From the NCBI GenBank assembly GCA_965649825.1, contig OZ287694.1, forward strand, positions 1,177,197 to 1,241,196: 64,000 nucleotides of DNA. Direction: 5' to 3'. Shown piece by piece: positions 3,463-37,908 of this stretch (position 1 is the first letter of the stretch; each line of letters starts with the position of its first letter). Both the position numbers and the translations under genes were made by a program. The notes under the pieces were generated by a model, which saw nothing but the letters and a program-made list of their open reading frames with translations, made no database searches and was not told the origin of the DNA. This stretch comes from Penicillus capitatus (lineage: Eukaryota > Plantae > Chlorophyta).

Positions 3463-4210
3463 GCACGAACAAACCGACGCTGACAGCGATCAAGCTCTTT
3501 ATTGTTACAAGAATTGGTTGGTCAAAGGACTGATGATTGGAAGAATGAAGTGTCACGTATGCGACGAGGGAAAGATTGCATCTGTATTATGTACACTTCT
3601 ATTATCGCGACATTTTTGATCCTATCTGGAGTTTCTGACGTCAGCCGCGGATTTGTGGTGATGTGGCTGTGGTCGAAGGATTGACTGCTCGTGTAAGGTG
3701 ACGAGGGATCGCCGTATATATGATGCCCTCAACACTGCAGGGGGCTATGGTCTGACAAGACGGGTACCGCGAAAGGAAACGTGTTGCCAAATGAGACACG
3801 GCAGCAGGAAGGCGCCCGTGAATCTGGGTTGCAGTGATCGTTCCGAAACGCGATGGGACAGACGGCGACAGTAACGTCTAAAACGTTCAAGATGACATGA
3901 CGATTATCGGTTAACGATTTTCGATCGAACAGTCGTATTGAATTACAAAACAGAGCTGTCAGCAGATTCAGCCAAAGGTGTCCAGATTGGGCGCAGTTAG
4001 TTGCCTAAGATTATTTGACTGTCAACACGTTCCGGTATCGCTTACTTATCCAGAATCCAACAACACTCATTCACTTCAAGAATCAGACAGTGGGACAATG
4101 TTGTTTCATCCAAGTCTGTTTCATCGTACATGACGAGTTCTTCAATAGTCCAGCTTCTTCTGTGTTCAGGGTATCGGTTACTCAATCGCTGATGGATGAT
4201 GCGAACAGCA

Positions 4211-5621
4211 TCACTTCGAGATGTTGAACGGACCAAGGACTCCATGGCATCTGTTGAGACTAGAAGACGCGAGCACCGCCGGATCCGATGCTGCTTTGGT
4301 GGACTTCGGCTTGGGTCCAAGAATGTCCTTCGGTAGCAGGGGTTTCATTTTAAGATCGCTCTCCTTGAAGATCGATGCGAAGTAAGGATGACGCAAGCAG
4401 GCCTCGGCGGTGGGACGCCGGGCTGGATTGTGGACCAGCATGATATCCAGCAGATCGATGGCGTCTGGAGGGGTCGCCTTCATCGTGTCTGCCAGGTTCT
4501 GGCGCTTGAAATCTGGATACTCGTGCCAATGTTCGCAGAGACAAGGCGCGTTCCAATCTTCGAGAGTCGGGGTGCCCAGTAGACGGAAGATCTGAATGAG
4601 CTGGTCGTATTGACAGTCGCCCCTGAAGAGCGTCACCTGTAGGCAAGACATGCGCGACCGAACTGGCGGGAGACGATGGCCTCACACTCTCGCAGAGCTC
4701 CGAGAAGATGCACGCGGAGCTCCAGATGTCGACGGCCGGACTGTGCCCCTCGTATCCCAGCAGCACCTCCGGTGGGCGATACCAGAGGGTGATGATCTGC
4801 GGACATAGACAGACTGCCACTGGGAAAGGGCGGTCAAGCGAGACACCTCCTCGGTCAGTTGGCGAATGGGCGTGGAGAACGTGCGCCCAAATCCAAAATC
4901 CGCCAGCTTTGCGATCGGTTTCTCGGCATCTGTTGTGTCGATCAAGATGTTGTGCGGCTTGAGGTCTCGATGCATCAGGCGTATCGAGTGACAGTGGTGC
5001 AGTCCCAGAAGGACGTGATACATGATCCTCTGTTTGCAGAAGATCGCGTCCCCTAAACGCGGTAGAGGTGCGGCTGACGGACCTTAACGATGTCGGGCTG
5101 AAGAGGGCGGTTTTTCTTCGAATAGACGCTCAGATCGCAGTCCAGATACTCAAAGACCTGCAAACACACGATCGTTGAAAGACTGTTTCCATACAACATC
5201 CCTCACCATGACACTGGTTTGCGATCTCGAGCCCGCGTTCGGCTTGACGTGCATCACGTTATGCAGCCTGTATGCACAAGGAAGGTCAGCGCGCCGACGG
5301 ACACCGTCGCCATCGGAATGGCGGAGCTCACTTGACGACGTGCGGCGAGTTCTTGAGCAGCTTGAGAAACGTCGCCTCGCGGAGCACGGTCGACGGAATG
5401 CCCTTCTCATGCGCCTGCGTTGTCGTTGATCGACGTTAGCGTCCGCATCGATCTTCGGCGATGCTCACGATGTTGTGGTGCTGCTTGATCGCCACGTTCT
5501 CTCCCGTTGCCGTTTCTCGCGCCAGGAAGACTGTGCCGTAGGTTCCCTCGCCGAGGTAGGCGTGAGCCGGATCCGGTATCTCGTAACCTTCTAGCTTGAT
5601 TGGCGACTGGCGTTGCGGCAT
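4211..5621 (-). CDS. Cyclin-dependent kinase, divergent CDKB-like, copy 1 (7 exons)
   Basis: Spliced product has GEGTYG (T14/Y15), [29 protein letters not shown]-loop [18 protein letters not shown] and GDCQYDQL. There are six canonical introns and no internal stops were seen. Confidence 0.9.
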
Positions 5622-5802
5622 CGGAAGAAGCAGTCGGCGTCGACTGATCCGAATCGTTGTGACTGAGCGAAGCCGGACAACTCGACTCAAGGGATAATTG
5701 CGAAGTGACTGACGATTATGTAGTTGATTTGCGTCTTGCTTCTTTCGGACGACGACGCGACTTCCCGATAGTGAAGATTCGATGACCACATTGGCAGAGA
5801 TT

Positions 5803-5900
5803 TTGGCCACGCCCGGTCACTGCACTCGCCATTCCTACGTCTTCTGTGCTTGGAGACCGACCCCGACCTTCTTCTTTCACATGGATTCGCTTTCTCCGAT
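5803..5900 (+). pseudogene. Dead copy of the 5' (transit-peptide-like) exon of the PGI locus
   Basis: Reads LATPGHCTRHSYVFCAWRP versus [19 protein letters not shown] at 28044 (minus). The ATG has mutated to TTG. Confidence 0.75.
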
Positions 5901-6100
5901 TGGACGCGGACACAAAAAGAACATGGTTCATGTGCTGGTCTCTCTGTAAGAGAAGATCCATACTCGAAGTCACGTCGAGCAGTTACAGGTTGCGTTCGAC
6001 AGGATGAGTCTCGAACCCCCAACAGGATCCAAGAGTGGATCGCTTTCTTACAGGACGAGCAGGCAGGTACTCCAGCACACTCGAAGAAAGTGCATTCGCT

Positions 6101-6260
6101 ACGCGTCGCAATGCACCATGATGTGACGCGTCGCAATGCACCATGATGTGACGCGTCGCAATGCACCATGATGTGACGCGTCGCAATGCACCATGATGTG
6201 ACGCGTCGCAATGCACCATGATGTGACGCGTCGCAATGCACCATGATGTGACGCGTCGCA
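6101..6260. repeat. 25-bp tandem repeat, 6 perfect units plus a 10-nt partial (ACGCGTCGCAATGCACCATGATGTG)
   Basis: Counted directly. No spacers. Lies about 480 bp upstream of the CDK copy 1 ATG. Confidence 0.97.
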
Positions 6261-6656
6261 GAGTGACGACACGGCCCCGGATGAGGAGACATCACAAGGA
6301 CGCTTCTCTTAGCATCGCAACGATAGAACCTGCCAAAAAATCACTAAAGTCAGGAACAGTGACGTTGACATGAGAACTGCTCTATCTCATTCTGTCTGTG
6401 CTTGTAAAAGCATCTAAAGGATTCGCGATCTAGAATTTGTCCGCTTTGTTTTTATATCGCGAATCCAATTTTTGAACTTCGATGTAGCGTTCGTTGCCTG
6501 GCCGACGTCCGAAGAGTAGACTCTGGCATCAAAGGATTTCACTTCATCAAAGAACCATTTCCCAGTACTTTCAGAACGACACGACATTGTCACATTACAT
6601 CGCCTGTGTTGTGCAGTCTGGTGTGGACAATGTTTTCGTGTAACTCCAAAATGGCG

Positions 6657-6664
6657 CCGCGAAA
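6657..6664 (-). promoter_or_regulatory. Candidate E2F site TTTCGCGG
   Basis: Matches the E2F consensus TTTSSCGS, lies ~1 kb upstream of the CDK, and is conserved in arm B (35061-35068). An 8-mer can occur by chance. Confidence 0.3.
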
Positions 6665-6870
6665 GTCATCCATCCTCATCGTTTTGCAGAAACCATAGTG
6701 TCCGTGTCAGCAGACGCAGAAACCCCCACGAGTTTAGCGCAGTCGTTGATGGCCGGATCCATTCTTGCTTGATGAACTATGCTGAAAAGACATCGACCGA
6801 TTCTCCTGAATAGCGAGAGGAGATCTGATGCCGATCGAGGTCGAACCAGTCGACATCGTCAGGGAGACGC

Positions 6871-8246
6871 ATGGAAACTCGACTGATTGGCTGCAATCTC
6901 GTAGAGTCTGACTGCCGACGCATCTTGCGAAACCCTGGCATCCGCCAGAAATCGCGACAGCCGGACACTCAGACTAGGTTCTCTATTAAACTCTCTGATC
7001 ACACCTGAAGGCTGCGACGGTCAGTTACACACAGTCAGGCAAAAGACTTCGTCCTTCGATGCATGTCGTGTCACCATGCCTCGATTCTTGGGGTGTCCCT
7101 CCCACATGCACTTTGCAGTGTCTGAAAGAGCATCTTGGATGCCTCCGTCTGCGGTCCGTGCAGACGCTGCTTCCGTTCAGAATCATGGGGCTGAGAAGTT
7201 TGAAGATTAATCGCGGGTTTATTCAAGATACCGCCCTAGGACGGCGAAGAAGGACAACGAACGTCTTGGCGCGACGGAACGGCGAATTGTTCGAGCCGGA
7301 GAAGAGCAGACTGAGATGGCGAGGGAGTCGACTGACTCCTCGGAGAACATCGCGTTTTTCATCGGCCGTCGTCGCCGATGATGGGTCAAAGTCGGCCACG
7401 GTCGACACTTGGCCTGAACGACGTCCATGGCCCGGGAGACTTGACTGTTTCAGCAGCAACGACGAAGCCGTCATTCGCTCGACGGAACAGAGATGGCAGT
7501 CCACAGGCCATGTCGGTTGAAAGCCTCTCGTAGCGACTGAGACGATCCGACAAGTCGGATGGCAATGACTGCCGAGAGGATCCTTCGCTATTCCCAGAAC
7601 CTGCACCGAGCAGCAGATTGTACACAGTGAGTGAGCAGTGCCCGGCCAGTCACAGCCATCACCATTAGCCTGTCCTAGGTAGGCGAGATGTCATCGATCT
7701 TCGATATGTGACGGTCACATCCTGCCTCTGCGGGGCGACGACGGGCTCAGTCAGACGTATGAAGCGCGATGCATTCTCAGAGCAGATCGTCCGAACGACA
7801 GCGATGCAGAAGTGGGATGGCCACAGGGCAGGGACCTGGACGCATCATCGATCCGTTTCTTCGACCTAAAGATGCTGCTGCGTGCTTCGCCGTTTCTTGG
7901 AAATCGGATCGCAGTCCGTCCCTTACCGTAGACGCATCGCTGTTGATGAAAGCATCTTTGCTCGATCCGTGTGTCTGCTCGGAAAATGCTTTGCTGACCT
8001 GTCCGCGAGAGACACGACTCCAGTGTGCAAGGTGGCCGCAGACGTACTCTGCCTCGACGTGAGTTCGGAGTTATTCTGGCAGACAGCCAGTTACAGAATC
8101 AGCCTGTCATTACTGTCTGGGATGCCAGTGCTCTCGATTGCCTGCACAGGTCCTCGATTGACTGGGCTCTGTGCGATCTGATGATGCGTGTGCTATCAGT
8201 GAGGATCCCCGCGGACATACTCGACGTGATCGCCGATGCAGATTGA
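6871..8246 (+). pseudogene. Decayed F-box/LRR-like gene (arm A copy)
   Basis: With one 1-nt frameshift it reads DWLHLVESDCRRILR, versus DWLRLPEDLWTRILR in the F-box at 37909. LRR-like fragments are present (LRSLKI). It has TGA at 7538-7540 where arm B has TGG, and lacks 132 bp present in arm B. A full gene model could not be built. Confidence 0.4.
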
Positions 8247-8527
8247 CTCATCACGACCATCAGGAACAGACGCATTCATTCCTCTGTCCGATTCTGCTGT
8301 CGTCTATCTGTTGTCGCCGAACTCATCTTGATCTCGTGTTCCGATGGGGCCGAGGATTCGACCAACACAGACGACTTCAATGATTGGTTTTGATGTTAGA
8401 ACCGGAACAGTGTGACTTAAAAGAAACGTACCAGTCACACCAAAGTCTCGTTCTTCCTACGCCCGTCACCGTCTCCAAGACGTGTGTGATGTGACAGTTA
8501 AGATCGCGCGACAGCATCCCCGTCGCC

Positions 8528-8920
8528 TCAGATTCTGCGATCAGTTGAATCAGTGCAGTCTGACGAAACTACGATCAAAACAGTCGTGCTGTCTGAAAAC
8601 GTTTCTCGGTCGAGATCGCATGCCGTCGAAATCAGATTTTGCGATCAGTTGAATCAGTGCTGTCTGACGAAACTACGATCAAAACAGTCGTGCTGTCTGA
8701 AAACGTTTCTCGGTCGAGATCGCATGCCGTCGAAATCAGATTTTGCGATCAGTTGAATCAGTGCTGTCTGACGAAACTACGATCAAAACAGTCGTGCTGT
8801 CTGAAAACGTTTCTCGGTCAAGATCGCATGCCGTCGAAATCAGATACTGCGATCAGTTGAATCAGTGCTGTTTGATGAAGCTTCGCGTAGTCGTGCTGTC
8901 TGAAAACGTTTCTCGGTTTT
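8528..8920. repeat. 104-bp tandem repeat, about 3.8 units
   Basis: The TCAGA anchor recurs at 8528, 8632, 8736 and 8840 (period 104). Confidence 0.95.
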
Positions 8921-10465
8921 GCGATCAAACGATTCAGTCCCGTCTTAAATAGCACGGAATGGGTACATAAGGCCCAGAGAACTCCGTTGTTTTGTTCTTC
9001 TGCGCTTTCGTCTTGTGTCGCTTGACTCTTCAAAAGCGTCGTCTGTTGAAGATTCCCATCATGAAGCTCTTGGCGGTTTTCTTGACTGTCCTCGTCGTCA
9101 TTGGAGTGAGCCACGCGACCTTCGAACACTAAATGCGTTGACTGTTGCTTTAGGGAGCCAGTGCTCAAAAGTGTAACCCAATGACCGACAGGAAATTTGA
9201 AGGCCCTTTCGCGTCAGAAATCACCTACGATTTTATGCAATGCTGCTATCTGTGTTATAAACATGAGAGTAAGTTCCAACTGTCTTCGATTCTAGTCAAT
9301 TCTTCGTTGCAGGGTGCGATATGTGGTCTTTTGATATCAGCACCTCATTGTGTGAATTCTCTGAGTTGGGTGAACTCATTCATGCTCCAGGCTGGATATC
9401 TGGCGAAATATACCTTGATGCCACTAAGTAGACAGCACTGCAATACATGAGCCTGCTGTCCGTTCATTCTTACCTAGTTGTAGCTTGATACCCAAATGTC
9501 CAACCTGTCCAACTGTTGATGTAACGAGATAGATCATTGTAGATGAATGGTCAGGTGCCGTCCGCCTGGAAATCCAAAGGCGCAGGAACGCGTTAAGAAA
9601 CGACTGCTTTCGAGCGGCGCAGACTCCGACAGCGCGATCACAGCTCGACTCAGTCTCACAGAGTTTCTGTCCAACGCGTCGAATTGGCAGTTAGTCGGTT
9701 TCAGATTTTTTTCACGTAATTGTCTCTTCGCTCAAGCGTACCTACGAGAAATTCCGGGGTATTCCACGAGCCCGTGGCCAAATTTTACTCGTCCATCGAC
9801 TGACTGACAAAAAGGCAGTCGAATTCTCCATCCTTTTGTTCTGTGAACCAAGCAGCTTTTGCTAACGTGTCAAGTCGATGCCGTAGGATCTCAAAATGAC
9901 CCTCGAGAAAAGAAGCGTGCACGTTTTTTTAAATTCACCCGTTCTCCAGGCTCACGAAATCGGAAACAGCGAAGTGCGAAACGACACTTTGACCTCGTCC
10001 CCGGAGGTGCATCACTCTACACGAATCTCAACGAACACTGTGATGGCTTCGGATACTGACTATTCTTCGGTATTGTTTCGAAATGGCATGTTCGATGTCA
10101 CAGGGTACGATTCTCCCCTCGTCGCCAGGCTTGCTTGCATATTTGCAAACCCACGAACCACATATGTGGCTTGTGAGATGTCCAATCATTGCAATGTCTA
10201 AAAGAAGCACAAATTCCGTGGTCAGCATGTATGTGTGGCCTTGTGAAGGGCGTTCTTAAATCATCGTCAATTGTGGATCTCTTCAGCGGAGAGCAGACGT
10301 GCCTGTGCTGAGAAGGATATCTCTCGATGGCCGGAATGACTTTGAGTGTCGAACGTCGAGCCGTACGAAAACGAAGTTCAAATGCGTCACCATTACGTTA
10401 TGTCTAACGTTTGCCATCCATCTATCAGAATTCCCACACCCCGAATAAAAGGAAGCAAGTCTTTT

Positions 10466-12313
10466 CTATCTGGGTGATGCTTCTGGTGTGCTCTCTGCCG
10501 AGGAATCGAAGCTCCTGGTAACGTGCGGCGAACGTTGCAGCGTCGGATGTGACGGACTCTGGGCCGCGTCTGTTGATGATCTTCCAGATCCCGGCAGCTG
10601 CGGAATATAAACTTCGAAAGGGGTAGGCTCCAATGTCATGTCACCGTCCTCCACGTAGATCGTCGCTTTCAAGGAATGATGATCGTGTCCCTCGACAATA
10701 AGAAAATTGCGCTTGGGTAGAACCTTCTGCTCACTTGGGTACTTAATCTTAAAGAAACGCACCATCTTCTCACGCGTGCCGCGATTGACACGGTTCGCAG
10801 CAATATTGAATCTGTGCATCAAATTGATGGCGACATACGGAGGCGGCGCATTGATGATAGCAGAGGTGATGATCTGTGGCATGAAGTTAGCATCCGATGC
10901 CAGATCTGGACATTTGGGATGCGAATAGAAGCGACCCAGTGCAGCACAGTGCACATCACCAGATAGGAATGTCACACGAAGTCTGTTCTTGATGGCCAGT
11001 TGCTGAAAATACTCGACCACTTTTCTACGTTCCTCTCGATGACAATCAGAGGTCCAATGATCCACCAAGTCATCTAACAGCTCCGGTTCATCATACTGAA
11101 ACGATACCAGGGACGAGAGGATGTTCGTTTTCACGAGAACGGCATTGATAGCAGCAAGCTTTGTCATTCTGGACATCAGTTCCAGGATCTTCTCCGAAAT
11201 AGGGACTCTGGGATAGAGTATAGGTACGGTGAAATTGACAATGAGATGTCGTACGGTGTTCGGTATTTGATACGCCCTGTCAAAAACGATTTTCCAGCTG
11301 TTGTCTGTTAAGATGCGTTCCTTTGTGCGTTCCGAACGAATATCCACTCCGAGAAGCGCGACGGATGGCCCCACCATTTTGAGAAACGAAAACGATGGCC
11401 CGCGCTCCGACACGCCGCCAAAGAGATCCGAATTCCCTTCTTCATAGCGCTGCAAAGTGGTGTGCTGCTGAAAAAGGAGATAGAATCGACGCGCCACCAC
11501 AAAGATCCCCAAAAAGACGGGAGCATTGAGGAGATCTTCGGGATAGGATCCCCATCCATCAAAGATATCGTGATCATCCCACAGCATCACACTGGGAATC
11601 GTCGCCACCATTTTTCTCAGGCTCGGTGCCAAGAAATGCTCACAGTAATGCACGAAGTAATAGTCGTTGGCCTCGTCTTCGAGATCCGCTTCAAAACCAA
11701 CCGTATGGCGATCGGCGCGATTGGGAATGCTAAGCCACTGATGTATTCTGGGCTGTCGAAAGACGTCGTCGTTATAGAGCTGATCGCCTCCTCCGAAAGC
11801 GAGATGCAATGCTTGTTCCTCGTGCTTCCGCATCAAGTGGCCGACCAAGGGATGATCATCGTCGATCATGTACTTTGCATCATCGACTTCGTGCGAGAAA
11901 CCGGAACAGGAATAGGCTGTCCAATGCCACTCTTGTGTGGCACCAGGTACCGTAAAGCGCCATTTTTCCAGCGATTCGCCTCCGATTTGCAGTTGATAGG
12001 TGATCTCGCGTTCGTAGTGTGGTAGAGCGAGATCTAGATCGAATCGCCAGAATTGCCACAGTTTGTACTGATCGAGCATATATCCCTCCAGCAAGATCGT
12101 TACGTCTTCCTCATCGATCAGGCGACATTTTGGCGGTGCTCCCTTCATCGCTGCTTCTTGGCAGATATAGAGGACGGACCCTTCCCACTTGGCCTCTCCT
12201 CCGTAAGCAACCGGCGGCGTGTATTGGCCAAATCTCAAAAAGGGACCGTAGGCGATCTGCTGCAGACGGTCGATTGACGCGACGTATGGGGATTTTCCCG
12301 TCGTCGTTGCCAT
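10466..12313 (-). CDS. PhoD-like metallophosphatase (PhoD_2 / fungal-type family), intronless
   Basis: One long ORF with YSCSGFS, GGGDQLYND, WDDHDIFDGWGSY, LDDLVDHW and FLSGDVH metal-binding motifs. Start placed at the first ATG. Confidence 0.8.
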   Translation of the reverse strand: MATTTGKSPYVASIDRLQQIAYGPFLRFGQYTPPVAYGGEAKWEGSVLYICQEAAMKGAPPKCRLIDEEDVTILLEGYMLDQYKLWQFWRFDLDLALPHYEREITYQLQIGGESLEKWRFTVPGATQEWHWTAYSCSGFSHEVDDAKYMIDDDHPLVGHLMRKHEEQALHLAFGGGDQLYNDDVFRQPRIHQWLSIPNRADRHTVGFEADLEDEANDYYFVHYCEHFLAPSLRKMVATIPSVMLWDDHDIFDGWGSYPEDLLNAPVFLGIFVVARRFYLLFQQHTTLQRYEEGNSDLFGGVSERGPSFSFLKMVGPSVALLGVDIRSERTKERILTDNSWKIVFDRAYQIPNTVRHLIVNFTVPILYPRVPISEKILELMSRMTKLAAINAVLVKTNILSSLVSFQYDEPELLDDLVDHWTSDCHREERRKVVEYFQQLAIKNRLRVTFLSGDVHCAALGRFYSHPKCPDLASDANFMPQIITSAIINAPPPYVAINLMHRFNIAANRVNRGTREKMVRFFKIKYPSEQKVLPKRNFLIVEGHDHHSLKATIYVEDGDMTLEPTPFEVYIPQLPGSGRSSTDAAQSPSHPTLQRSPHVTRSFDSSAESTPEASPR

Positions 12314-22656: not shown

Positions 22657-25579
22657 TCACAAAGACGTAAGATGTGGCGGTCGATGGGATGCTCTACACT
22701 CAACACGGCTCTTCACCGTATTCTTTCGATTCTTTTTGAAGAGATGCACTCTACCTGGATGCGTTTCACATGGCCAGCAAGACATCCATGAGGTCCAGTG
22801 CTGTATAACCAAGTCGGGGGGTGCAAGTTCGTTAGGTTTAGGTAAACGATCTCCTTCGCCTCTCGAACGTATTTTGGTCTTCTTTCCTGAGACAGAACAG
22901 CCATCCTGACCATGCTTGCTGATTTCATTGTTTGTGACCCGTGCATTGATCTGTTGTGATGAACTCTGCCCTGTTGGATGTAAGGTCGTCCATGAACACG
23001 GAGTTGTAAATGTAGGCTCTTCTGTCCGCCGATCAAAATGAGGCATCCATCGATGCGCCTGTAATTTCGGAGATCTCTCGCGGGAGCCGTGATCCTTGCC
23101 TAAAATCGAGCGCATTGTCCCGAGGTGTGGTGTGAGAGAAGATAGACTGGAAGTGTCTGAGGAGCTGTCTGGTTTGGAAGAGATGAGGCTGAGCCACCAT
23201 GTCGCCCACTTGAGACACCATCCTCGACGGATCCCTCGAATACAGCAGCTGCCTAAAGACAGGGCGCGTCTGTCTGCTAAGACGACAGTGCGGTATTCCT
23301 ACCTGTGACGAAGATGGCGATAACCATAGCTATTAGGATGAGCATCCGTGACCAGCACTTGTGCACGAACAGGCAAAACACGTTGAAAATATTCGGACAG
23401 TAATCGGAGCAGGAAAGGGAAACGGGTTCGCGGCCAGGGCCATTGCCGTCTTGAGGTGTTGGGTTCTGTGGCAGCTCCTCGAATTCGGTCTGTCCCACCG
23501 AGAACGTGACGTTTTGCTTATCCAATTCCTCACCCTGAAAAAAAGCGGCGTCAACGAACCCGTCTGCGAAGATCTCTGTCAACGAGAGAGGAACGAAGAG
23601 TGATCCAGCACGTCAGGTTTTCTCTTTGACTGGCCGTCGCCATTTGAATGAGATATGCGGGAAGGACTCGTGTGCTCTGAGCGTCGATGAAGGCTTTCTG
23701 CGCAGGAGACGACAACACGCCGCTGCTGCAGTTGGTCACCTGATCGCGAAATGTCCTCGACGATGCCGACCGAGCGTAAGGGAGAGAACCGTGACGGTGT
23801 ACTCGGCCGAAATGTACCCGATGTTTCGAATCTGGACGTGAAGATAGCCGCGATCCGAGAGCGACGCAAACGCGCCTTCGCCACACGTCACGTTGTTGAA
23901 ACTGCACACCTCGGCTGATACGATTTCTCCCGGGCTGGTGTGGATGACGAATCGTAAGTCATCGGCCGCGGCAGTCAGTGTGATCACGGAATTGCGAATT
24001 CCGAAGACGGGAAACTCCAACACAATGATTCCGCCACTTTGGCCTGTGCTCTACAGCACCGCCTTCGTATCGAGTGCGCCACAAAGATGTCGAGACTTGC
24101 GCGATGGTGGATCTCGCCGTGTAGCGCGTAACGAGGTAAAGGGGTGTCTGTCCCTTGGAGATGCGATCGAGATCTTCGTTATATCGATCGTGTAGCTGAT
24201 TGGCGAGACAGGTGCCAACGGGACGTGCGCAGCCATCTGTCTGAAAACGGAATGCCGAAAACGATGTGCCGATCTTGTTGCATTCGTTTCCTATATATGC
24301 AGACCATCGTGCGCTTCATCTCGTTGCCGTCGATGTGCAAACCGTCAAGCGAGATTTGCGTCTTGTCGATGAGCATCCACTCTTCGTGGTTACTCGATAG
24401 CGCCACGGCAGGATCTGCTCCTGGCGGAAAGGGAATCATGAGCATCTTGCCGCTACAGAAAGGCGCAGCAGTGAAGGGTGCGAAATGGAGAAACGTTTAT
24501 CGATTCTTGCTTGAGAGCCGGCGGATCGGTGTAACCGGCCAGATCGCCGAGGAGCTCTGCCTCGACGGTGTTATTCGCATTTTTCTTGATCGGATCGGAT
24601 GGCCGAAGTTTCAAACGCTCTTCCCCGATCGATTCGTTTCGTTGGCGATCGGAGATTGCGATCTCGATCACGAAATCGATCGACGATGTGCCCACCTCGA
24701 AGCCCTTAACCTCTTTCATGCCATCCACGATCGAACGGAGACGGACGATTACTTGATACCACAAGGGATCGAGAAAGAGACAGTGGGCGGAGGACGGATT
24801 CGAATCGAAGAAATTCCAACCCCCGTCAAAGAAATCGCAATTCAGGTTTGCTCTCGTCCGCTCGTCGAGTGAACCAAACGTATCGCTGATGACTTGACTG
24901 GAAGTACAGGAGCAGCAGAATCCTTGACTGTCGGCGACGCGTTGGCCCTCTAGATAGTACCAACCGCATGTCGGCGTATCATCGAAATCTCCGTCCTACG
25001 ATGAAAGGGCATCCATCACTCGATCGAAACGGACATCGTCTGCGGGCACATCACAAGACGAGACCCCACTATGCACCACTTCTTTGGGTTGAGAATTGAA
25101 AGCTTGGACGTAAGTGAGTGGATAGACCGCATAGACAGGCGATTTCGTGAGCGACAGGACTAGCGTCTGGTTCAGATCTCGACAGTCGCAGCTGACGTCG
25201 GCGGCGTAGTCGCAAGGACAAGGACAGGTTGTACTGAAACGCAGAGAGGAGTGATTTCAGGGACGTCTGGCGGCCATACCTGCCGATGCACGTGAGGTCA
25301 AACTGTAGGTTCTCCGTTTCGAGCTCTCGACCACCCTCCACCGCAACGGTCACAACGAGCTTCTCCTCGCAAGAGAGATCCTGGCCAGCAATGCTCGCAT
25401 CCTTGATTGCTAAGTCCAGAAGTAAGCCGCCATGTCAAGGTGCATTCAGCCACGATCACCGTTCCGTCAAGCACGCAGCGTTCGAGTTTGCTGCTCGAGA
25501 TCACCGTCGCCAGTACTTCCTCCCGATGCGATAAGCAGACGAGGATGATAACGACGTTAAGAATGGCACCGAGCGTCAT
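22657..25579 (-). CDS. HAP2: Gamete fusogen HAP2/GCS1
   Basis: Signal peptide followed by VISSSKLERC, CPCPCDY..CDCRDL, DSQGFCCSC, RANLNCDF, SAHCL..DPLWY, LLGDLAGY, CNKIGTSFSAFRFQTDGCARPVGTCLANQL and SPGEIV. The pre-TM region CSDYCPNIFNVFCLFVHKCW precedes a TM helix and a Cys-containing cytosolic tail. The 3' end is approximate. Confidence 0.95.
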
Positions 25580-25738: not shown

Positions 25739-28044
25739 TTACTCTTTAGATTTGAGAATGTCGACTGGGAAAACGTCTCTGGGTTCCGGATAGAGAACCT
25801 GCGTCTTGCCTTCCAAGTATTTGTTCATGAGTTTCGTGGTCGATGCGTTGAATCCGTCACCGGTCACCACTTTTCTGTTCTTCGTGCGTGTGGCATTGAT
25901 GGTCGTTCGCACACGTCCAGCCAATACTTTGCCGAGTTCCACTCCCCATTGATCGAAGGAGTTAATGCCCCACAGAAATCCTTGCACGGCAACGCGATGT
26001 TCATACAGAGCCAAGATCTGGCCTGTGGTATACGCCGTCAATTCTGGCAACATGATGGATAGCGACGGTCGATTTCCTCTAAAGGTCCTATGCGGAATCA
26101 AGTAGTCTGGCACATTCTCGGATCTCAGTTGAACAGCATCCTTGCCATAAGCCAAGGCATCCGTCTACAATCGGCATTTTGGAGAGGTCAAAGGTATGGT
26201 GATGCCGTACCTGAGCAAAGAAGTTGCACATGAGTTCGTCATGGTTCGAGACGATTTCGTCCTTGAGATAGACGCTTTGTTGCGATCGGACGATGCCGAT
26301 GAACTCGCAAGGGACGACGCGCCCTTGATGGATGAGTTGATAGAAGGAATGCTGTCCATTTGTCCCAGGCTCTCCGAAATCGATCTCGCCCACATCGTAA
26401 GACAGCGGATGACCCGTAATGTCTACGCCTTTTCCGTTCGACTCCATGGAGACTTGCTGAATGTGTGGTGCCAGCTTTGACAAAGCTTGACAGTAAGGGA
26501 GAATGGCACGGGTGGAGTATCCCAGGAATGTTGTATTCCATACACCCAACAGACCCAGAATGACTGGAAGGTTCTGCTCGAAAGGTGCTGCGACAAAGTG
26601 ATCGTCGACATCGTTGGCTCCTCGCAGAAAATCGACCATGATATCGAATCCATACTGTAGACAAAGAGGCAGCATTCCAACAGCACTGCAGACAGAATAG
26701 CGGCCTCCGACCCAATCCCAGAAGCCAAAGGCATTCTCTGGATCGATGCCAAACTTCTTGACGAGACTCAGATTGGTGGATACCGCCACCATGTGTTTGG
26801 ACACTGCCTCTTCGCCCAGACCCTCAACGAGCCATGAACGCAGTGTTCGAGCGTTGAGCATGGTCTCAGCGGTGGTAAATGTCTTGGAAATGATGACAAC
26901 AAGGGTGTCCTCTTGGTTGAAGCCTTTCAAGGCACGAGCTACGTCGATGGGGTCGACGTTGGCTAAGAAACGCAGACAGCGGCCATCTGCGGCGGCTGCG
27001 GATTTCTGTTCGGTCCGAAGGGCAGTGTGGACGAAGAGAGGACCCAAGAAACTCCCACCGATGCCCACCGCCACCACGTTCTTGAGCGGCTTTCCTGTCA
27101 CGCCCAGCCACTCTCCGTTTCTCACTTTTTCGCTAAAAGACTTGATCTTGTCGAGCACTTCCCACACTTCTGGCACCACATTCTTTCCCTCCACAAAAAT
27201 CTCCTGCATTGCATTGCGGCGTCCACCCCACATCGACACCCTGTCTCATCTACGCGCCTGATCACGACGCGCACGGGTAGCGATGTGCAGAACAGGACGG
27301 ACTTCTGTGGAGTTGATGGACTCGCCAGAGTACATCGCATCGATCTTCTCCTTTAGCTGAGCACGTTCTGCCAAATCAAATAGGAGCTGTCATTCCACAC
27401 AGCTCTCAACAGATGACTCTCCGTGTGGCATCTACACTCGCCTGCATCGTACGGTCCGTCACTCTTTGACGGCAAAAGTCCAAATAGATGCCATTGTGTT
27501 CTTTGATGAGCATGTCTGTGCGTTCATCGTCCATCAAAAGATCTTTGAGATGCCTGCAACGTTACAGACAGAGTGATAGAAGGTGTGTCATAGGTGCACT
27601 GGTCACTGTTGGTCAATCTCAGCGACATGTTCACGCAGGGCCTGCCACTCCAAGGCATAGGCGATCGCCCCTTGTGGTGCCTCCTCTTCCTACGCGATGA
27701 CCTCACCTTTGACACGACGCGCCACGAACGAACTTTCTTCGCGTGTGCCGGTGAAGATAACTTCTCCTATACGGCAAACAGGTGAACGTTTGGATCCCTG
27801 TTGGCATTTGGACTCACCATGTCGAGGGTACTCACAATCTGCCCGACTTTTCTTTGCGCGTAGATTCTGGTCCTACAGAGGTAGCTCCAGGTAGTCCACA
27901 TATGCGTCGTTGGCGGTACGCTGGACGGCGATGGTAAGTCGGAAGAGGATTGATAGAACGTCCGCGTAAGCGACAGAAGGACAGGACCGGTTTCCGAGCA
28001 CAGAAGACGTTGGAATGGCGAGTACAGAGACCGTACGTGGCCAT
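25739..28044 (-). CDS. PGI: Glucose-6-phosphate isomerase (eukaryotic cytosolic-type sequence, possible N-terminal transit peptide)
   Basis: [52 protein letters not shown] and [11 protein letters not shown]. The catalytic body is certain; the 5' exons upstream of ~27700 are uncertain. Confidence 0.93.
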
Positions 28045-28203
28045 GTCCTTTTCCCACGCGGTCGGCGGATCTTGACGGTCTGTCCGAGAGACGCAAATCA
28101 AGGTACATGATCGTCAGTCACGTCACAATTGTTCTTGCGTCGCCTTGTCTAGCTCCGCTTACTCGTTGCGATTCGGATCTGTTGACGCCAAATTCTTCTT
28201 TCG

Positions 28204-29613
28204 ATGCCGCGACGTTACGTACCCGTAAAGCTAGAAGGGTACGAAGTTTCGGATCCGGCCCGCGCCTACCTCGGCGAAGGAACTTACGGCACAGTCTTCC
28301 TGGCGCGAGACACGGCAACGGGAGAGTGTGTTGCAATCAAGCAGCACCATAACATCGTGAGCATCGCCGAAGACCGATGCGGACGCTGACGTCGAACGAC
28401 ACAAACACAGGCGCATGAGAAGGGCATTCCGTCGACCGTGCTCCGCGAGGCGACGTTTCTCAAGCTGCTCAAGAACTCGCCGCACGTCGTCAAGTGAGCT
28501 CCGCCATTCCGATGGCGACGGTGTCCGTCGGCGCGCTGACCTTCCTTGTGCATACAGGCTGCATAACGTGATGCACGTCAAGTCGAACGGAGGCTCGAGA
28601 TCGCCGACGAGCGTCATGGTGAGGATCTTGTGTAAAACAGCCTTTCATCGATCGTGTGTTTTACAGATCTTTGAGTATCTAGACTGCGATCTGAGCGTCT
28701 ATGCGAGAACACACCGCCCTCTTCAATTCGACATCATTAAGGTCCGCCAGAAGCACCTCTACCACGGTCATAGAACGCGATCTTCTGCAAACAGAGGATC
28801 ATGTATCACGTCCTTCTAGGACTGCACCACTGTCACTCGATGCGCCTGATGCATCGAGACCTCAAGCCGCACAACATCTTGATCGACACAACAGATGCCG
28901 AGAGACCGATCGCAAAGCTGGCGGATTTTGGATTTGGGCGCACGTTCTCCACGCCCATTCGCCAACTGACCGAGGAGGTGTCTCGCTTGACCGCCCTTTC
29001 CCAGTGGCAGTCTGTCTATGTCCGCAGATCATCACCCTCTGGTACCGCCCACCGGAGGTGCTGCTGGGATACGAGGGGCACAGTCCGGCCGTCGATATCT
29101 GGAGCTCCGCGTGCATCTTCTCGGAGCTCTGCGAGAGTGTGAGGCCATCGTCTCCCGCCAGTTCGGTCGCGCATGTCTTTCCTCCAGGTGACGCTCTTCA
29201 GGGGCGACTGTCAATACGACCAGCTCATTCAGATCTTCCGTCTCCTGGGCACCCCGACTCTCAAAGAATGGAACGCGCCTTGTCTCTGCGAACATTGGCA
29301 CGAGTATCCAGATTTCAAGCGCCAGAAGCTGGCTGACACGATGAAGGCGACCCCTCCAGACGCCATCGATCTGCTGGATATCATGCTGGTCCACAATCCA
29401 GCCCGGCGTCCCACCGCCGAGGCCTGCTTGCGTCATCCCTACTTCGCATCGATCTTCAAGGAGAGCGATCTGAAAATGAAACCCCTGCTGCCGAAGGACA
29501 TTCTTGGACCCAAGCCGAAGTCCACCAAAGCAGCATCAGATCCTGCCATACTCGCGTCCTCAAGTTTTAACAGATGCCATGGAGTCCTTGGTCCGTTCAA
29601 CGTCTCGAAGTGA
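28204..29613 (+). CDS. Cyclin-dependent kinase, divergent CDKB-like, copy 2 (7 exons; probable ancestral copy)
   Basis: Same exon structure as copy 1 (intron 1 = 28357-28410). [15 protein letters not shown] and TLWYRPPE are intact. Confidence 0.92.
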
Positions 29614-30737
29614 TGCTGTCGCATCATCCATCAGCGATTGAGTAACCGATACCTTGAACACAGAAAAAGCTTGACTATTGAAGAACTCATCACGTACGAT
29701 GAAACAGACTTTTGCAGAAACAACGCATCTCCATTGTCTGATTCTGGAACTAATGGAGTGTCGATGGAATCTGGCTTAGTAATGATACCCGAACGCGTTG
29801 AAGATTAGACAATCCTAGACAACTGCGCCCCATCCGGACACAGCCCAAACAAATCTGCTGATAGACACCTCCTGTTTTAAACTCAGTTTCGATTATCGAT
29901 GGAAGATCGTCCAACCTACAATCGTCACGCCGTTTCGATCATCTTCGACGTACGTCACCGTCGTTATCTGTCACATCGCGTATCGGAACGATTACTTCAG
30001 CATAATTGCATACTGCTCTTGTAACTGCATTTCGTTTCTCAGCTGCGTTTCGCCTATTAGAAACGCACGAACCGGATCGCACGGTGACCTCTTTTGCGCC
30101 AAGCGCTTTCGATAGGTTTCACCTTGGCAAGCGACGGACAACGTCTGTTATAGATCCTATTGTGTTTCTATGAGGCTCCGCTTCCGTGGACTCGTCTGTT
30201 CAGTGTTCGCGTCGTCCTAATCTACCCCCTTGTGAACGCATTGCTTTCGTTTTTTGTTGAGCGTTATATCTTCGGGAATACGTGCAGTAGGTTATTTGCA
30301 GAAGTTGTTTAACGACGAATCCAGCCCTAATTCGCACCGTTCATACAGTTCGAGCTTTATTTTTACCCCCTATTGCATTATTTGAGAGAAAACGACCGTC
30401 ACGGGAAGTCAATACAGCGTCAGGTCTTCAAACGGATCCAACGTTGTGATCGTTGCTTCGACGACGAAGCAGAAGACGACCCACCTGTCAGTGCGTTCAA
30501 GAACAGGAAAAGGGCACGATCGAACAGAACGAAAGGCTCTACTGGACAAAGCGTAGAACGCACTCGATACAGAAACTTGTTCGCCTATTATCGATAACAG
30601 ACCGTTTGGCTTTACTCGATTCTCTGCCTAGCACGCAATGATTGGCCATCGCCGTTCTGTCCTCTGTTAAACCTCAGAAAAGCAGAAAGAGGTTGGTCCC
30701 GGAAGAAGGAACGACTTCAATTCAGTTTCGTCGCCGC

Positions 30738-31558: not shown

Positions 31559-32774
31559 GTCATATAGGTGAGATCTTGGCGTGTTTGTTTGGCCCTTTTA
31601 GCTTCGCGACTTGTCACCATCTGCACGAAGAAGTCAGACAAACAGCCGGACGAGCCGATCGTTTCCCGAAGGAAGCGCAGCGTCCCTTGACAACCATCTA
31701 TCTCACGAGGGCAGAGATACCTCGGCGCCATTCTACGATTCGCCTTACCGACCTCGCGCGTTCGGTTAATCAGCAAGTCATGAAGAAACCCGTGTTCCTT
31801 CCTCGGGAATCAGTTATTGAAGTCAGGCGTCGATTTTGTGACTCGACGATGGCGGTCTGGCCGAACGGCAAGACGGAGAGAGTTCACTGTCTTCACCTCA
31901 GTCGGACGAGAACCGCAATAATTCTATCCACGGACCTAGTAGAACCCATCAGTGTTCTTGGGCGCTGAAATCCCTCCACTGCGTACAAATTCAAACACCA
32001 ATCTCCTCTACCTATCACGACGAGTTGGATAGACACTGTGAGACTGCGTCGAGCTGTGATCGCCCTGTCGGAGTCTGCGCCGCTCGAAAGCAGTCGTTTC
32101 TTAACGCGCTCCTGCGCCTTTGGATTTCCAGGCGTGCAGCACCTGACCATTCATCTACAATGATCTATCTCGTTACATACACAGTTGGACAGGTTGGACA
32201 TTTGGGTATCAAGCTACAACTAGGTAAGAACGAACGGACAGCACGCTCATGTGTTGCAGTGCTGTCTACGCAGTGGCAACGGTGTTTACCGTGCCAGATA
32301 TCCAGCCTGGAGCTGGAATGAGTTCACTCACCTCAGACAATTCACACACATAGTTGCCGGTATCATAAGACCACATATTGCACTCTGCAACGAAGAATTG
32401 ACTAGAATCAAAGACAGTTGGAACTCACCTGTATAGTCATAACACAGATAGCAGCATTCAATATAACTGGCGACGTTTTCTGAGTAGAAAGGATTTACAA
32501 ATCTCGCGTCGTAGATTGGTCTACACTCTTGAGCACTGGCTCCCTGAAGCAACAGTCAACGCATTTAGTGTTCGAAGGTCGCGTGGCTCACTCCCATGAC
32601 GACGAGGACAGTCAAGAAAACCGCCAAGAGCTTCATGATGGGAATCTACGTCAGACGACGCTTCTGAAGAGTCAAGCGACACAAGACAAAAGCGCAGAAG
32701 AACAAAACAACGGAGTACTCTTGGCTTTATATACCCATTCCGTGCTATTTCAGACGGGACTGAATCGTCTGATC

Positions 32775-33065
32775 GCAAAACCGAGAAACGTTTTCAGACA
32801 GCACGACTACGCGAAGCTTCATCAGACAGCACTGATTCAACTGATCGCAGAATCTGATTTCGACGGCATGCGATCTCGACCGAGAAACGTTTTCAGACAG
32901 CACGATTGTTTTGATCGTAGTTTCGTCAGACTGCACTGATTCAACTGATCGCAAAATCTGATTTCGACGGCATGCGATCGCGACCGAGAAACGTTTTCAG
33001 ACAGCACGACTGTTTTGATCGTAGTTTCGTCAGACTGCACTGATTCAACTGATCGCAGAATCTGA
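32775..33065. repeat. 104-bp tandem repeat, about 2.8 units (one unit fewer than arm A)
   Basis: Reverse complement of the 8528-8920 unit. AATCTGA recurs three times versus four in arm A. Confidence 0.93.
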
Positions 33066-33346
33066 GGCGACGGGGATGCTGTCGCGCGATCTTAACTGTC
33101 ACATCACACACGTCTTGGAGACGGTGACGGGCGTAGGCAGAACGAGACTTTGGTGTGACTGGTACGTTTCTTTTAAGTCACACTGTTCCGGTTCTAACAT
33201 CAAAACCAATCATTGAAGTCGTCTGTGTTGGTCGAATCCTCGGCCCCATCGGAACACGAGATCAAGATGAGTTCGGCGACAACAGATAGACGACAGCAGA
33301 ATCGGACAGAGGAATGAATGCGTCTGTTCCTGATGGTCGTGATGAG

Positions 33347-34854
33347 TCAATCTGCATCGGCGATCACGTCGAGTATGTCCGCGGGGATCCTCACTGATAG
33401 CACACGCATCATCAGATCGCACAGAGCCCAGTCAATCAAGGACCTGTACAGGCAATCGAGAGCACTGGTATCCCAAACAGTAATGACAGGCTGATTCTGT
33501 AACTGGCTGTCTGCCAGAATAACTCCAAACTCACGTCGAGGCAGAATACGTCTGCGGCCACCTTGCACACTGGCGTCGTGTCTCTCGCGGACAGGTCAGC
33601 GAAGCATTTTCCGAGCAGACACACGGATCGAGCAAAGATGCTTTCATCAACAGCGATGCGTCTACGGTAAGGGACGGACTGCGATCCGATTTCCGAGAAA
33701 CGGCGAAGCACGCAGCAGCATCTTTAGGTCGAAGGAACGGATCGATGATGCGTCCAGGTCCCTGCCCTGTGGCCATCCCACTTCTGCATCGCTGTCGTTC
33801 GGACGATCTGCTCTGAGAATTCATCGCGCTTCATACGTCTGACTGAGCCCGTCGTCGCCTCGCAGAGGCAGGATGTGACCGTCACACATCGAAGATCGAT
33901 GTCATTTCCTCTACCTGGGACAGGCTAATGGTGATGGCTGTGACTGGGCGGGCACTGCTCACTCTCTGTGTACAATCTGCTGCTCGGTGCAGGTTCTGGG
34001 AACAGCGAAGGATCCTCTCGGCAGTCATTGCCATCCGACTTGTCGGATCGTCCCAGTCGCTACGAGAGGCTTTCAACCGACATGGCCTGTGGACTGCCAT
34101 CTCTGTTCCATCGAGCGAATGACGGCTTCGTCGTTGCCGCTGAGACAGCCAAGTTCACAGGCCATAGACGTCTTTCCTATAGGAGTCGACCGTGGCCGAC
34201 TCTTAACCCATCATCGGCGACGACGGCCGATGAAAAACGCGATGTTCTCCGAGGAGTCAGTCGACTCCCTCGCCATCTCAGTCTGCTCTTCTCCGGCTCG
34301 AACAATTCGCCGTTCCGTCGCACCAAGACGTTCGTTGTCCTTCGTTGCCGTCCTAGGGCGGTATCTTGAATGAGACCCGTGATTGATCTTTAAACTTCTC
34401 AGCCCCGCGATTCTGAACGGAAGCAGCGTCCAGACGGGCAGCAACAATATTTGCCTCACTGGGGAGACATCGATTCCGCATTATCGATGCTGCGGAGACA
34501 TCCTTCTAGGATGAGGAATTGTAAGGCGGCGATTCGCGTACGCTCCCGAAGACACGGTCGTCCGCACGGACCGCAGACGGAGGCATCCAAGATGCTCTTT
34601 CAGACACTGCAAAGTGCATGTGGGAGGGACACCCAAAAAATCGAGGCATGGTGACATGACATGCATCGAAGGACGAAGTCTTTTGCCTGACTGTGTGTAA
34701 CTGACCGTCGCAGCCTTCAGGTGTGATCAGAGAGTTTAATAGGGAACCTAGTTTGAGTGTCCGGCTGTCGCGATTTCTGGCGGATCCCAGGGTTTCGCAA
34801 GATGCGTCGGCAGTCAGACTCTACGAGATTGCAGCCAATCAGTCGAGTTTCCAT
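33347..34854 (-). pseudogene. F-box/LRR-like gene remnant (arm B copy, less decayed)
   Basis: Same F-box-like start as arm A. Retains LQFLILEGC (inside the 132 bp missing from arm A), ILRCSQNLHR and a last exon NQPVITVWD...IPADILDVIADAD*. Confidence 0.4.
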
Positions 34855-35467
34855 GCGTCTCCCTGACGATGTCGACTGGTTCGACCTCGATCGGCATCAG
34901 ATCTCCTCTCGCTATTCAGGAGAATCGGTCGATGTCTTTTCAGCATAGTTCATCAAGCAAGAATGCATCTGGCCATCAACGACTGCGCTAAACTCGTGGG
35001 GGTTTCTGCGTCTGCTGACACGGACACTATGGTTTCTGCAAAACGATGAGGATGGATGACTTTCGCGGCGCCATTTTGGAGCTACACGAAAACATTGTCC
35101 ACACCAGACTGCACAACACAGGCGATGTAATGTGACAATGTCGTGTCGTTCTGAAAGTAACTGGGAAATGGTTTTCTTTAATGGAGTGAAATCCTTTGAT
35201 GCCAGAGTCTACTCTTCGGACGTCGGACAGGCAACGAACGCTACATCGAAGTTCAAAAATTGGATTCGCGATATAAAAACAAAGCGGACAAATTCTAGAT
35301 CGCGAATCCTTCAGATGCTTTTACAAGCACAGACAGAATGAGATAGAGCAGTTCGCATGTCAACGTCACTGTTCCTGACTTTAGTGATTTTTCTGCAGGT
35401 TCTATCGTTGCGATGCTAAGAGAAGCGTCCTTGTGATGTCTCCTCATCCGGGGCCGTGTCGTCACTC

Positions 35468-35552
35468 TGCGACGCGTCACATCATGGTGCATTGCGACGC
35501 GTCACATCATGGTGCATTGCGACGCGTCACATCATGGTGCATTGCGACGCGT
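35468..35552. repeat. 25-bp tandem repeat, 3 units plus a 10-nt partial
   Basis: Reverse complement of the 6101 unit. Lies about 470 bp upstream of the CDK copy 3 ATG. Confidence 0.97.
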
Positions 35553-35769
35553 AGCGAACGCACTTTCTTCGAGTGTGCTGGAGTACCTGCCTGCTCGTCC
35601 TGTAAGAAAGCGATCCGCTCTTGGATCCTGTTGGAGGTCGAGACTCATCCTGTCGAGCGCAATCTATAACTGCTCGACGTGACTTCGAGTATGGATCTTC
35701 TCTCACAGAGAGACCAGCACAAGGACCATGTTCTTCTTATGTCTCCGTCCCTATCGGAGAAAGCGAATC

Positions 35770-35850
35770 CATGTGAAAGAAGAAGGTCGGGGTCGGTCTT
35801 CAAGCACAGAAGACGTAGGAATGGCGAGTGCAGTGACCGTGTGTGGCCAA
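35770..35850 (-). pseudogene. Dead copy of the PGI 5' exon (arm B)
   Basis: Reads LATHGHCTRHSYVFCA*. The ATG is lost and there is an in-frame TGA. Confidence 0.7.
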
Positions 35851-36024
35851 GATCTCTGCCAATGTGGTCATCGAATCTTCACTATCGGGAAGTCGCGTCG
35901 TCGTCCGAAAGACGCAAATCAACTACATAATCGTCAGTCACTTCGCAATTATCTTCTGAGTCGAGTTGTCCGGATTCGCTCAGTCACAACGATTCGGATC
36001 AGTCGACGCCAACTGCTTCTTCCG

Positions 36025-37433
36025 ATGCCGCGACGCCTGTCGCCAATCAAGCTAGAAGGTTACGAGATACCGGATCCGGCTCACGCCTACCTCGGCGAGG
36101 GAACCTACGGCACAGTCTTCCTGGCGCGAGAAACGGCAACTGGAGAGAACGTGGCGATCAAGCAGCACCACAACATCGTGAGCATCGCCGAAGATCGATG
36201 CGGACGCTAACGTCGATCAACGACAACGCAGGCGCATGAGAAGGGCATTCCGTCGACCGTGCTCCGCGAGGCGACGTTTCTCAAGCTGCTCAAGAACTCG
36301 CCGCACGTCGTCAAGTGAGCTCCGCCATGCCGATGGCGACGGTGTCCGTCGGCGCGCTGACCTTCCTTCTGCATACAGGCTGCATAACGTGATGCACGTC
36401 AAGTCGAACGCGGGCTGGAGAACGCCGACCAGCGTCATGGTGAGGATCTTGTGTCAAAACAGCCTTTCATCGATCGTTGTTCGCAGATCTTTGAGTATCT
36501 AGACTGCGATCTGAGCGTCTATGCGAGAACACACCGCCCTCTTCAGCCCGACATCGTTAAGGTCCGCCAGAAGCACCTCTACCACGGTCATGGGACGCAA
36601 TCTTCTGTGGACAGAGGATCATGTATCACATCTTGCTTGGACTGCACCACTGTCACTCGATGCGCCTGATGCATCGAGACCTCAAGCCGCACAACATCTT
36701 GATTGACACAACAGACGCCGAGAAACCGATCGCAAAGCTGGCGGATTTTGGATTTGGGCGCACGTTCTCCACGCCCATTCGCCAACTGACCGAGGAGGTG
36801 TCTCGCTTGACCGCCATTTCCCAGTGGCAGTCTGTCTATGTCCGCAGATCATCACCCTCTGGTATCGCCCACCGGAGGTGCTGCTGGGATACGAGGGGCA
36901 CAGTCCGGCCGTCGATATCTGGAGCTCCGCGTGCATCTTCTCGGAGCTCTGCGAGAGTGTGAGGCCATCGTCTCTCACCAGTTCGGTCGCGCATGTCTTT
37001 CCTCCAGGTGACGCTCTTCAAGGGATACTCTCAATATGACCAGCTCATTCACATCTTCCGTCTCCTGGGCACCCCGACTCTCGAAGAGTGGAGTACACTG
37101 TCTCTTTGCGAACATTGGCACGAGTATCCAGATTTCAAGCGCCAGAACCTGGCAGACACGATGAAGGCGACCCCTTCAGACGCCATCGATCTGCTGGATA
37201 TCATGCTGGTCCACAATCCAGCCCGGCGTCCCACCGCCGAGGCCTGCTTGCGTCATCGCTACTTCGCATCGATCTTCAAGGAGAGCGATCTGAAAATGAA
37301 ACCCCTGCTGCCGAAGGACATTCTTGGACCCAAGCCGAAGTCCACCAAAGCAGCATCAGATCCTGCCATACTCGCGTCCTCAAGTCTCAACAGATGCCAT
37401 GGAGTTCTTGGTCCTTTCAATATCTCGAGGTGA
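36025..37433 (+). CDS. Cyclin-dependent kinase, divergent CDKB-like, copy 3 (7 exons)
   Basis: Same structure as copies 1 and 2, with GYSQYDQL replacing GDCQYDQL. The frame is intact. Confidence 0.9.
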
Positions 37434-37908
37434 TGCTTGCATCATTCATCATCAGCGACAGAGTGCCGATAACCTGAACACCAAAAAAACTAGACTCTTG
37501 AAAAAAAAATCGTTCCGTACGATGAAAGAAACTTCTGAAGAAACAACATTGTCCCATTGTCTGGTTCTTGGAGTGAATGGGCGTTGTTGTATTTTTTGGT
37601 AAGTAAGCGATACCGAAACATGTTGGCCGTCAAAAAATTCGAGTCAACTGCGTCCCCATGTGGACACAGCCTTAACAAGTCTGCTAAAGGTGTTTGCTAT
37701 GTTGCACCTTTAGCTTCAGAGTGTTTAATGGAAAATCGCCTAGTCCGATAATCGTCACGTTTGTTTTTCATCATTTAGCCGTTGGCGTAGTTACAAAGAG
37801 CGTTGGCGTTTTTTTCTCGTTCGAGCGTTAGTCACGGAAACTGTCTGGGCGACACTGATTTGCGTTACTTCTGCAACGGCCTTTCACTTCGTCGAGGCGT
37901 TCGTCGAT

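Follow-up and report, generated by a model that had tools for sequence, protein, structure and literature searches.

We analysed a 64-kb window (64,000 nucleotides, hereafter the window) of nuclear DNA from the green alga Penicillus capitatus. The window is part of the 1.84-Mb contig ctg340529_34x_l in the European Nucleotide Archive (ENA) metagenome assembly ERZ25074695, and the locus described here lies near the middle of that contig. Two inverted arms, each carrying a gene of the cyclin-dependent kinase (CDK) family, enclose a spacer that contains HAP2, the gene for a gamete-specific fusogen, together with a third, partial copy of the repeat. We consider it probable, at roughly 80%, that this locus is an old inverted segmental duplication, namely a conserved gene-bearing genomic palindrome with a 22-kb spacer and a third internal copy, whose arms are homogenised by infrequent ectopic gene conversion. 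An earlier note on this DNA had reported two long inverted arms around the HAP2 segment and proposed that the segment might exist in two orientations, possibly linked to sex. The arms are real, since self-BLAST and repeat finding both recovered them; the proposal concerning orientation and sex fared less well and is weighed below.

The left arm (L) occupies positions 3978-9681 of the window and consists of the CDK gene and about 4.06 kb of non-coding DNA upstream of it. Its inverted counterpart, the right arm (R), occupies 32018-37667 and likewise contains the CDK gene and about 4 kb of upstream DNA. The spacer between them (9682-32017; 22,336 bp) is single-copy except for the third partial copy (M; 27975-29999, plus strand), which comprises the CDK gene only and is direct with respect to R and inverted with respect to L. 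In self-BLAST, the alignment of L (3978-9681) with R (37667-32018) consisted of three collinear pieces, which were 91.6%, 95.8% and 90.8% identical and had bit scores of 4586, 2680 and 1454, respectively. Past 3978/37667 and 9681/32018, the identity between L and R drops to 53-66%, which is the noise level. The limits given in the earlier note (3830-9920 and 31790-37760) thus exceed the arms by about 100-240 bp at each end, and its left limit of 3830 does mark the end of a match, but of that between L and M and not of that between L and R. M matched L at 3830-5872 (87.0%, inverted) and R at 35781-37685 (87.6%, direct) in self-BLAST, so that its counterpart in each arm is the outermost 2 kb. 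A second CDK copy in the spacer had been noticed before and is indeed present, although it had been listed only as a gene and not as the third copy of the repeat.

The identity between the arms is uneven. It decays toward both arm edges and ranges from 79% to 100% in 100-bp windows, with perfect identity extending over 299 bp at most. The 307 mismatches among 5,487 aligned columns are clustered, with an index of dispersion of 6.9 as compared with 0.94 after permutation; in 2,000 permutations, a value as high was never obtained. The patchiness described in the earlier note is therefore genuine. One of its examples, 9180-9450, is a diverged tract of 79-83% identity, whereas the other, 7400-7440, adjoins a small indel in windows that are 92-93% identical.

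The same locus was found in a related species. The closest relative of the PhoD-like phosphatase protein encoded in the spacer is 86% identical and lies on contig ctg303802 (1.37 Mb) of ENA assembly ERZ26696514, with a near-twin on contig ctg303793 of the same assembly; coverage of each contig is about 150x. We compared 59 kb around the locus on each of these contigs, which are denoted a (ctg303802) and b (ctg303793), with w denoting the window; the comparison of ctg303802 was made without 1,224 bp of its right arm, aR (record 470073-471296). Note that the R arm of ctg303802 has about 1 kb of extra sequence, absent from ctg303793 and bounded by 286-bp direct repeats that are 730 bp apart and 99.65% identical; the pattern resembles that of a recent local tandem duplication. 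The two contigs are collinear throughout and 99.2%, 99.2% and 99.3% identical in the left flank, the spacer and the right flank, respectively, that is, they differ by about 0.8%. They are probably two haplotypes of a diploid or two very close co-occurring strains.

Both relative contigs are fully collinear with the window and about 85% identical to it in genic DNA, and the window spacer aligned with that of the relative as a single 20-kb high-scoring segment pair of 86.6% identity. The order common to both species is the left flank, the L arm with its CDK gene, the spacer genes from PhoD to glucose-6-phosphate isomerase (PGI), M, about 2 kb of poorly conserved sequence, the R arm with its CDK gene, and a fructose-1,6-bisphosphatase gene. 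In both species, about 785-790 bp separate the 3' end of the PhoD gene from the inner edge of L, and the outer arm edges agree within about 100 bp. That both species have these three copies, with edges at matching places, indicates that the architecture is older than the species split and is no assembly artefact.

Whole-arm identity within genomes was 93.4% for wL-wR, 93.5% for aL-aR and 92.9% for bL-bR, whereas between the species it was only 73.0% for wL-aL, 73.0% for wL-aR, 72.7% for wR-aR and 72.0% for wR-aL, with no trace of positional orthology. Likewise, the synonymous divergence (dS) of the CDK gene was 0.12-0.16 among paralogues of one genome and 0.44-0.53 between species, whichever copies were paired. 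As judged from these sequences, the arms group by species and not by position, which is concerted evolution. At the outermost ~200 bp, on the other hand, the arms are 73-76% identical within species as compared with 63-72% between species. The arms are thus as diverged within as between species at these positions, indicating that the duplication took place at or before the split; such edge divergence is the pattern to be expected if conversion rarely reaches the edge of a repeat.

The three copies in the window form a mosaic. At 184 sites L and R agree, at 94 sites L and M agree, and at 65 sites M and R agree, and these sites occur in runs. L and R go together over the 5' part of the gene, all three copies are near-identical at 5418-5240, and M and R go together at 5240-5050; these are followed by runs of L with M at 5045-4386, of M with R at 4385-4262, and again of L with M at 4238-4116. 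In the relative, the variable sites of the arms are mostly fixed differences between L and R that are common to a and b (262 sites), and there are also runs where a single arm of one contig alone differs. The dS between aM and bM was 0.057, whereas that between the alleles of L, or between those of R, was only 0.004-0.008. Several differences between aM and bM lie in short runs in which M of one contig has L or R variants that M of the other lacks; in other runs, an M-specific tract is kept in only one contig. These patterns show exchange events young enough to differ between contigs that are 0.8% apart, so that exchange is ongoing. The grouping by species, the mosaic of L, M and R, and the tracts that differ between a and b bear out the repeated exchange between arms that had been suggested from the window alone.

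The gene shared by the three copies is intact throughout. The coding regions of CDK-L (4211-5621, minus strand), CDK-M (28204-29613, plus strand) and CDK-R (36025-37433, plus strand) each have 7 exons encoding 363 amino acids and six GT..AG introns of 47-64 nt; in CDK-L, the frame is intact and the GT..AG introns measure 49-64 nt. CDK-L and CDK-R are both transcribed away from the spacer. The best matches of the protein were the Giardia CDK 3gbz (E = 4.6e-70) and human CDK1/2/5 (E ~1e-65). Its catalytic motifs are intact, with a glycine loop, HRDLKPxN, DFG and a T-loop threonine, its cyclin-binding helix is a PSTAIRE-type variant, PSTVLRE, and its features are those of the CMGC/CDK family. On this sequence evidence, the arm gene is a CDK1/2/5-like member of the cyclin-dependent kinase family; an NCBIfam search with the protein returned generic bacterial kinase models only. 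All nine CDK copies in the window and the two relative contigs have an intact frame and canonical splice sites, and the ratio of non-synonymous to synonymous divergence (dN/dS) was 0.14-0.28 (0.25-0.28 for CDK-M as compared with CDK-L and CDK-R), indicating that the copies are kept by selection.

The arm DNA upstream of the CDK gene (5622-9681 and 32018-36024) evolves at about the synonymous rate between the species. No sign of coding was found in these ~4 kb, in which between-species tblastx scores were equal in all frames, and searches for Pfam domains and for Rfam or tRNA matches revealed no gene, transposon or RNA. This part of the arms contains two tandem repeats. A 25-bp repeat is present in 6.4 copies in L (6101-6260) and in 3.4 copies in R (35468-35552), and a 104-bp array is present in 3.8 copies in L (8528-8917) and in 2.8 copies in R (32780-33065). 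The latter array, with units of 104 bp in the window and 108 bp in the relative, lies at the same position of the arms in both species and varies from 2.8 to about 8.5 copies.

These results are consistent with the following course of events. The three copies were already arranged in this way before the two species split. Occasional homologous repair, with one copy serving as template for another, would afterwards have repeatedly overwritten stretches of tens to hundreds of bases, mostly as non-crossover gene conversion, leaving the copies ~93% alike within a genome while the species drifted to ~73%. Purifying selection accounts for the intact state of all three kinase genes, and the region is probably protected from loss by the essential genes that its spacer contains. 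If L and R were to cross over, the spacer would be inverted, and such an inversion may be a rare by-product without evident regulatory consequence; HAP2 would then be one passenger of the spacer.

Exchange is likely to be rare, because the arms are 6-7% diverged. The steady-state relation c = 2µ/d, where c stands for exchange, µ for mutation and d for arm divergence, has been applied to Y palindromes (PMC8600007). With d of ~0.06 for the arms and equilibrium assumed, c would be ~30 µ, as compared with ~12,000 µ implied by the d of 1.64e-4 of the human Y palindrome P6 (PMC8600007). If equilibrium holds, we infer that exchange occurs much too seldom to serve as a developmental or frequent switch.

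Several observations weigh against this account. In each species, both arms have retained about 4 kb of DNA that seems to be free of constraint, without explanation or evident function. In addition, some exchanges in the relative look reciprocal: near the inner edge of the arms, aR equals bL over ~360 alignment columns; in the adjacent ~240 columns, aL has a 45-bp indel and most variants in common with bR; and a six-site intron haplotype occurs in aL and bM and in neither bL nor aM. Such swaps could fit two successive crossovers, i.e., inversion followed by re-inversion, or two separate conversions. The orientation was read from three assemblies, two of them from one sample, so that a minority orientation is possible in so small a set. 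Finally, the selection recorded here is that on the gene copies, as distinct from any on the palindromic arrangement itself.

We regard it as very unlikely that the locus is a programmed or frequent flip-flop, in which recombination between the arms inverts the HAP2 segment as a heritable gamete or mating-type switch, as in the yeasts Ogataea and Komagataella. That inverted repeats bracket a segment with a gamete-specific fusogen, that the arms do recombine, and that some of the exchange patterns between a and b look reciprocal are in keeping with such a switch. However, the orientation of the spacer was the same in all three assemblies (w, a and b) over the two species, which are collinear throughout with no spacer inversion between them. 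The PhoD gene ends 785 bp from the arm, and its exact protein was found on one contig only in the case of the window and likewise for each relative contig; no contig with the alternative orientation was found in the collection. The claim that the segment exists in two orientations finds no support in any of the three assemblies. Moreover, arms that are only 93% identical point to rare exchange, which does not suit a frequent switch. The spacer orientation of primate X palindromes differs in about half of species comparisons (PMC8327919); the conserved orientation here suggests that crossovers are rare or removed by selection. Occasional inversion on evolutionary time scales is plausible.

A link of the locus to sex, as raised in the earlier note, also found no support. 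The spacer ends in PhoD on one side and in poorly conserved, domain-free sequence on the other, and no opposite mating-type gene sets were recognised there; lineage-specific sex genes of a kind that escapes recognition are possible. We found no RWP-RK/MID-like motif anywhere in the window, and no telomere repeats in it either, with the locus lying ~0.92 Mb from either contig end. The divergence of the spacer between a and b is 0.8%, the same as that of the flanks, with no excess of the kind seen in sex regions; this argues against a sex-determining region, unless a and b are of the same type. The HAP2 gene of Chlamydomonas is not part of the mating-type locus and is activated in trans by MID (PMC8777248), indicating that a local structural switch is not needed for sex-limited HAP2 expression in green algae. 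Furthermore, a crossover within the arms would leave all local junctions unchanged, as each spacer end always abuts the same arm sequence, and inversion could exert an effect only through long-range position effects or through the 7% by which the arms differ. There is only a slight chance that the palindrome acts as a low-frequency heritable inversion switch, in which crossovers, at which the reciprocal-looking exchanges between a and b may hint, flip the HAP2 segment and the orientation biases gamete type via a position effect or the 7% arm difference. If true, an inversion switch at the HAP2 palindrome would represent a flip/flop homothallism system outside fungi.

We also considered whether the duplications arose independently and in parallel in the two species, instead of once with subsequent concerted evolution. 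Recent independent events would equally give arms that are more alike within than between species. This explanation is nevertheless highly improbable, because it would need the same three copies, places, orientations and edges to arise twice, because the arm edges are as diverged within species as between them, and because the mosaic patterns require exchange in any case. An assembly artefact, be it a collapsed or misjoined haplotype or a chimeric palindrome, is scarcely credible even though the window comes from a metagenome assembly and was judged from assembled sequence, since long accurate reads would separate arms that differ by 6-7% and indels, 22 kb of unique genes lie between them, a misplaced haplotype would not give intact diverged paralogues with species-specific mosaics, and the same architecture in two independently assembled contigs of another sample rules out the misassembled haplotype that the earlier note had named as a possible refutation.

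The genes of the spacer are, in order, PhoD, RPLP0, RINT1, a long kinase-containing gene, HAP2, PGI and CDK-M, followed by the ~2 kb of poorly conserved sequence. The gene content that had been read from the sequence before was confirmed: RPLP0 was identified by its Ribosomal_60s and RL10P_insert domains, and RINT1 and the protein kinase were recovered as well. HAP2 (HAP2/GCS1) lies on the minus strand at 23280-25434, which is the approximate span of the matching exons, and its HAP2-GCS1 domain (PF10699) was found with E = 7.8e-68 and 229.7 bits against a cut-off of 27.4. Its best matches among solved structures were 6dbs, 6e18 and 5mf1 (E ~1e-77), which we take to be Chlamydomonas HAP2 ectodomains, and the matches to 7s0k (8.3e-23), 5ow4 (2.8e-14) and 5ow3 (1.5e-13), presumably HAP2 of non-chlorophyte organisms, were far weaker. 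Structures of Chlamydomonas HAP2 have been described in PMC6170185 and PMC5332557. PGI (25739-27239, minus strand; PF00342, E = 1.3e-141) and CDK-M are transcribed divergently.

The PhoD_2-family phosphatase gene (10466-12313, minus strand) is a single exon encoding 615 amino acids, and 785 bp separate its 3' end from the inner edge of L. The nearest named relatives of its protein are those of Bryopsis (46%) and Ostreobium (44%), and the Bryopsis PhoD locus has no synteny with the window. A scan of JGI metagenomes with PhoD returned one close relative, 62% identical and on a contig that, at 1.6 kb, is too short to reveal the orientation, with the others at 37% or less. Between RINT1 and HAP2, a run of long open reading frames on the plus strand (16712-22158) ends in the protein-kinase domain (20469-21245). 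This run is probably one large gene, and the open reading frames of it that we tested had no recognisable domains beyond the kinase domain.

Outside the palindrome, a single-exon gene for fructose-1,6-bisphosphatase adjoins the locus (41555-42832, plus strand; 425 amino acids, with 407 in the orthologous call of the relative). Its N-terminal extension of ~100 amino acids may serve as a plastid transit peptide. At 39894-40430 on the minus strand there is an exon of an NTF2 and RRM (G3BP-like) protein, whose best database relative is 53% identical. There is also a short inverted match of 141 bp and 74% identity between 39687-39826 and 54123-54262, outside the locus. Introns across the window are very short (47-71 nt), and in the whole 64 kb of this gene-dense nuclear DNA we found no tRNA genes and no Rfam family at the gathering threshold. 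Taken with the HAP2 closest to Chlamydomonas structures, the PhoD closest to Bryopsidales and the extended fructose-1,6-bisphosphatase, the short introns tentatively point, on the basis of few proteins, to a chlorophyte.

The sex chromosomes of animals and plants provide the best-known examples of gene-bearing palindromes with arm-to-arm conversion, and the locus described here is a small, clean example from chlorophyte nuclear DNA. Its conservation across two species, with a third copy that joins in the exchange, shows that the same dynamics operate in compact genomes of microbial eukaryotes. With three copies in two orientations and known boundaries, it is tractable enough to measure how ectopic conversion compares with crossover, and at present it has no bearing on sex determination or HAP2 regulation. 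When we searched the literature for inverted repeats of algal nuclear genomes that evolve in concert, the papers returned were either on organelles or unrelated. Plastid inverted repeats evolve in concert around single-copy regions and mediate flip-flop isomerisation; however, they are essentially identical and constantly recombining, whereas the algal locus is nuclear and has introns and arms that are 6-7% diverged.

The flip/flop systems of yeasts (FF1 of Ogataea polymorpha and FF2 of Komagataella phaffii) are alike in that an inverted repeat flanks an invertible multi-gene segment tens of kb long (PMC6692504). In these yeasts, however, MATa and MATalpha lie at opposite ends of the segment, a silencing centromere or telomere stands beside one end, and both orientations occur among strains (PMC6692504), none of which was seen here; a centromere could, however, have gone unrecognised. 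Primate X and Y palindromes, such as human P24 around FLNA/EMD and the Y palindrome P6, share large inverted arms and a unique spacer able to hold housekeeping genes (PMC8327919, PMC8600007), and also an intact arm gene family under purifying selection, arm-to-arm conversion and conservation across species (PMC8327919, PMC8600007). They differ from the algal palindrome in arm identity (>99% as compared with ~93% here), exchange relative to mutation being roughly 350-fold rarer in the alga, and in arm length, which is tens to hundreds of kb as compared with 5.7 kb. In the alga, moreover, a third internal copy joins the exchange, and the locus has no known link to a sex chromosome. Finally, ~50% of primate X palindromes vary in orientation between species (PMC8327919), whereas the orientation of the algal palindrome was conserved in every comparison at hand.

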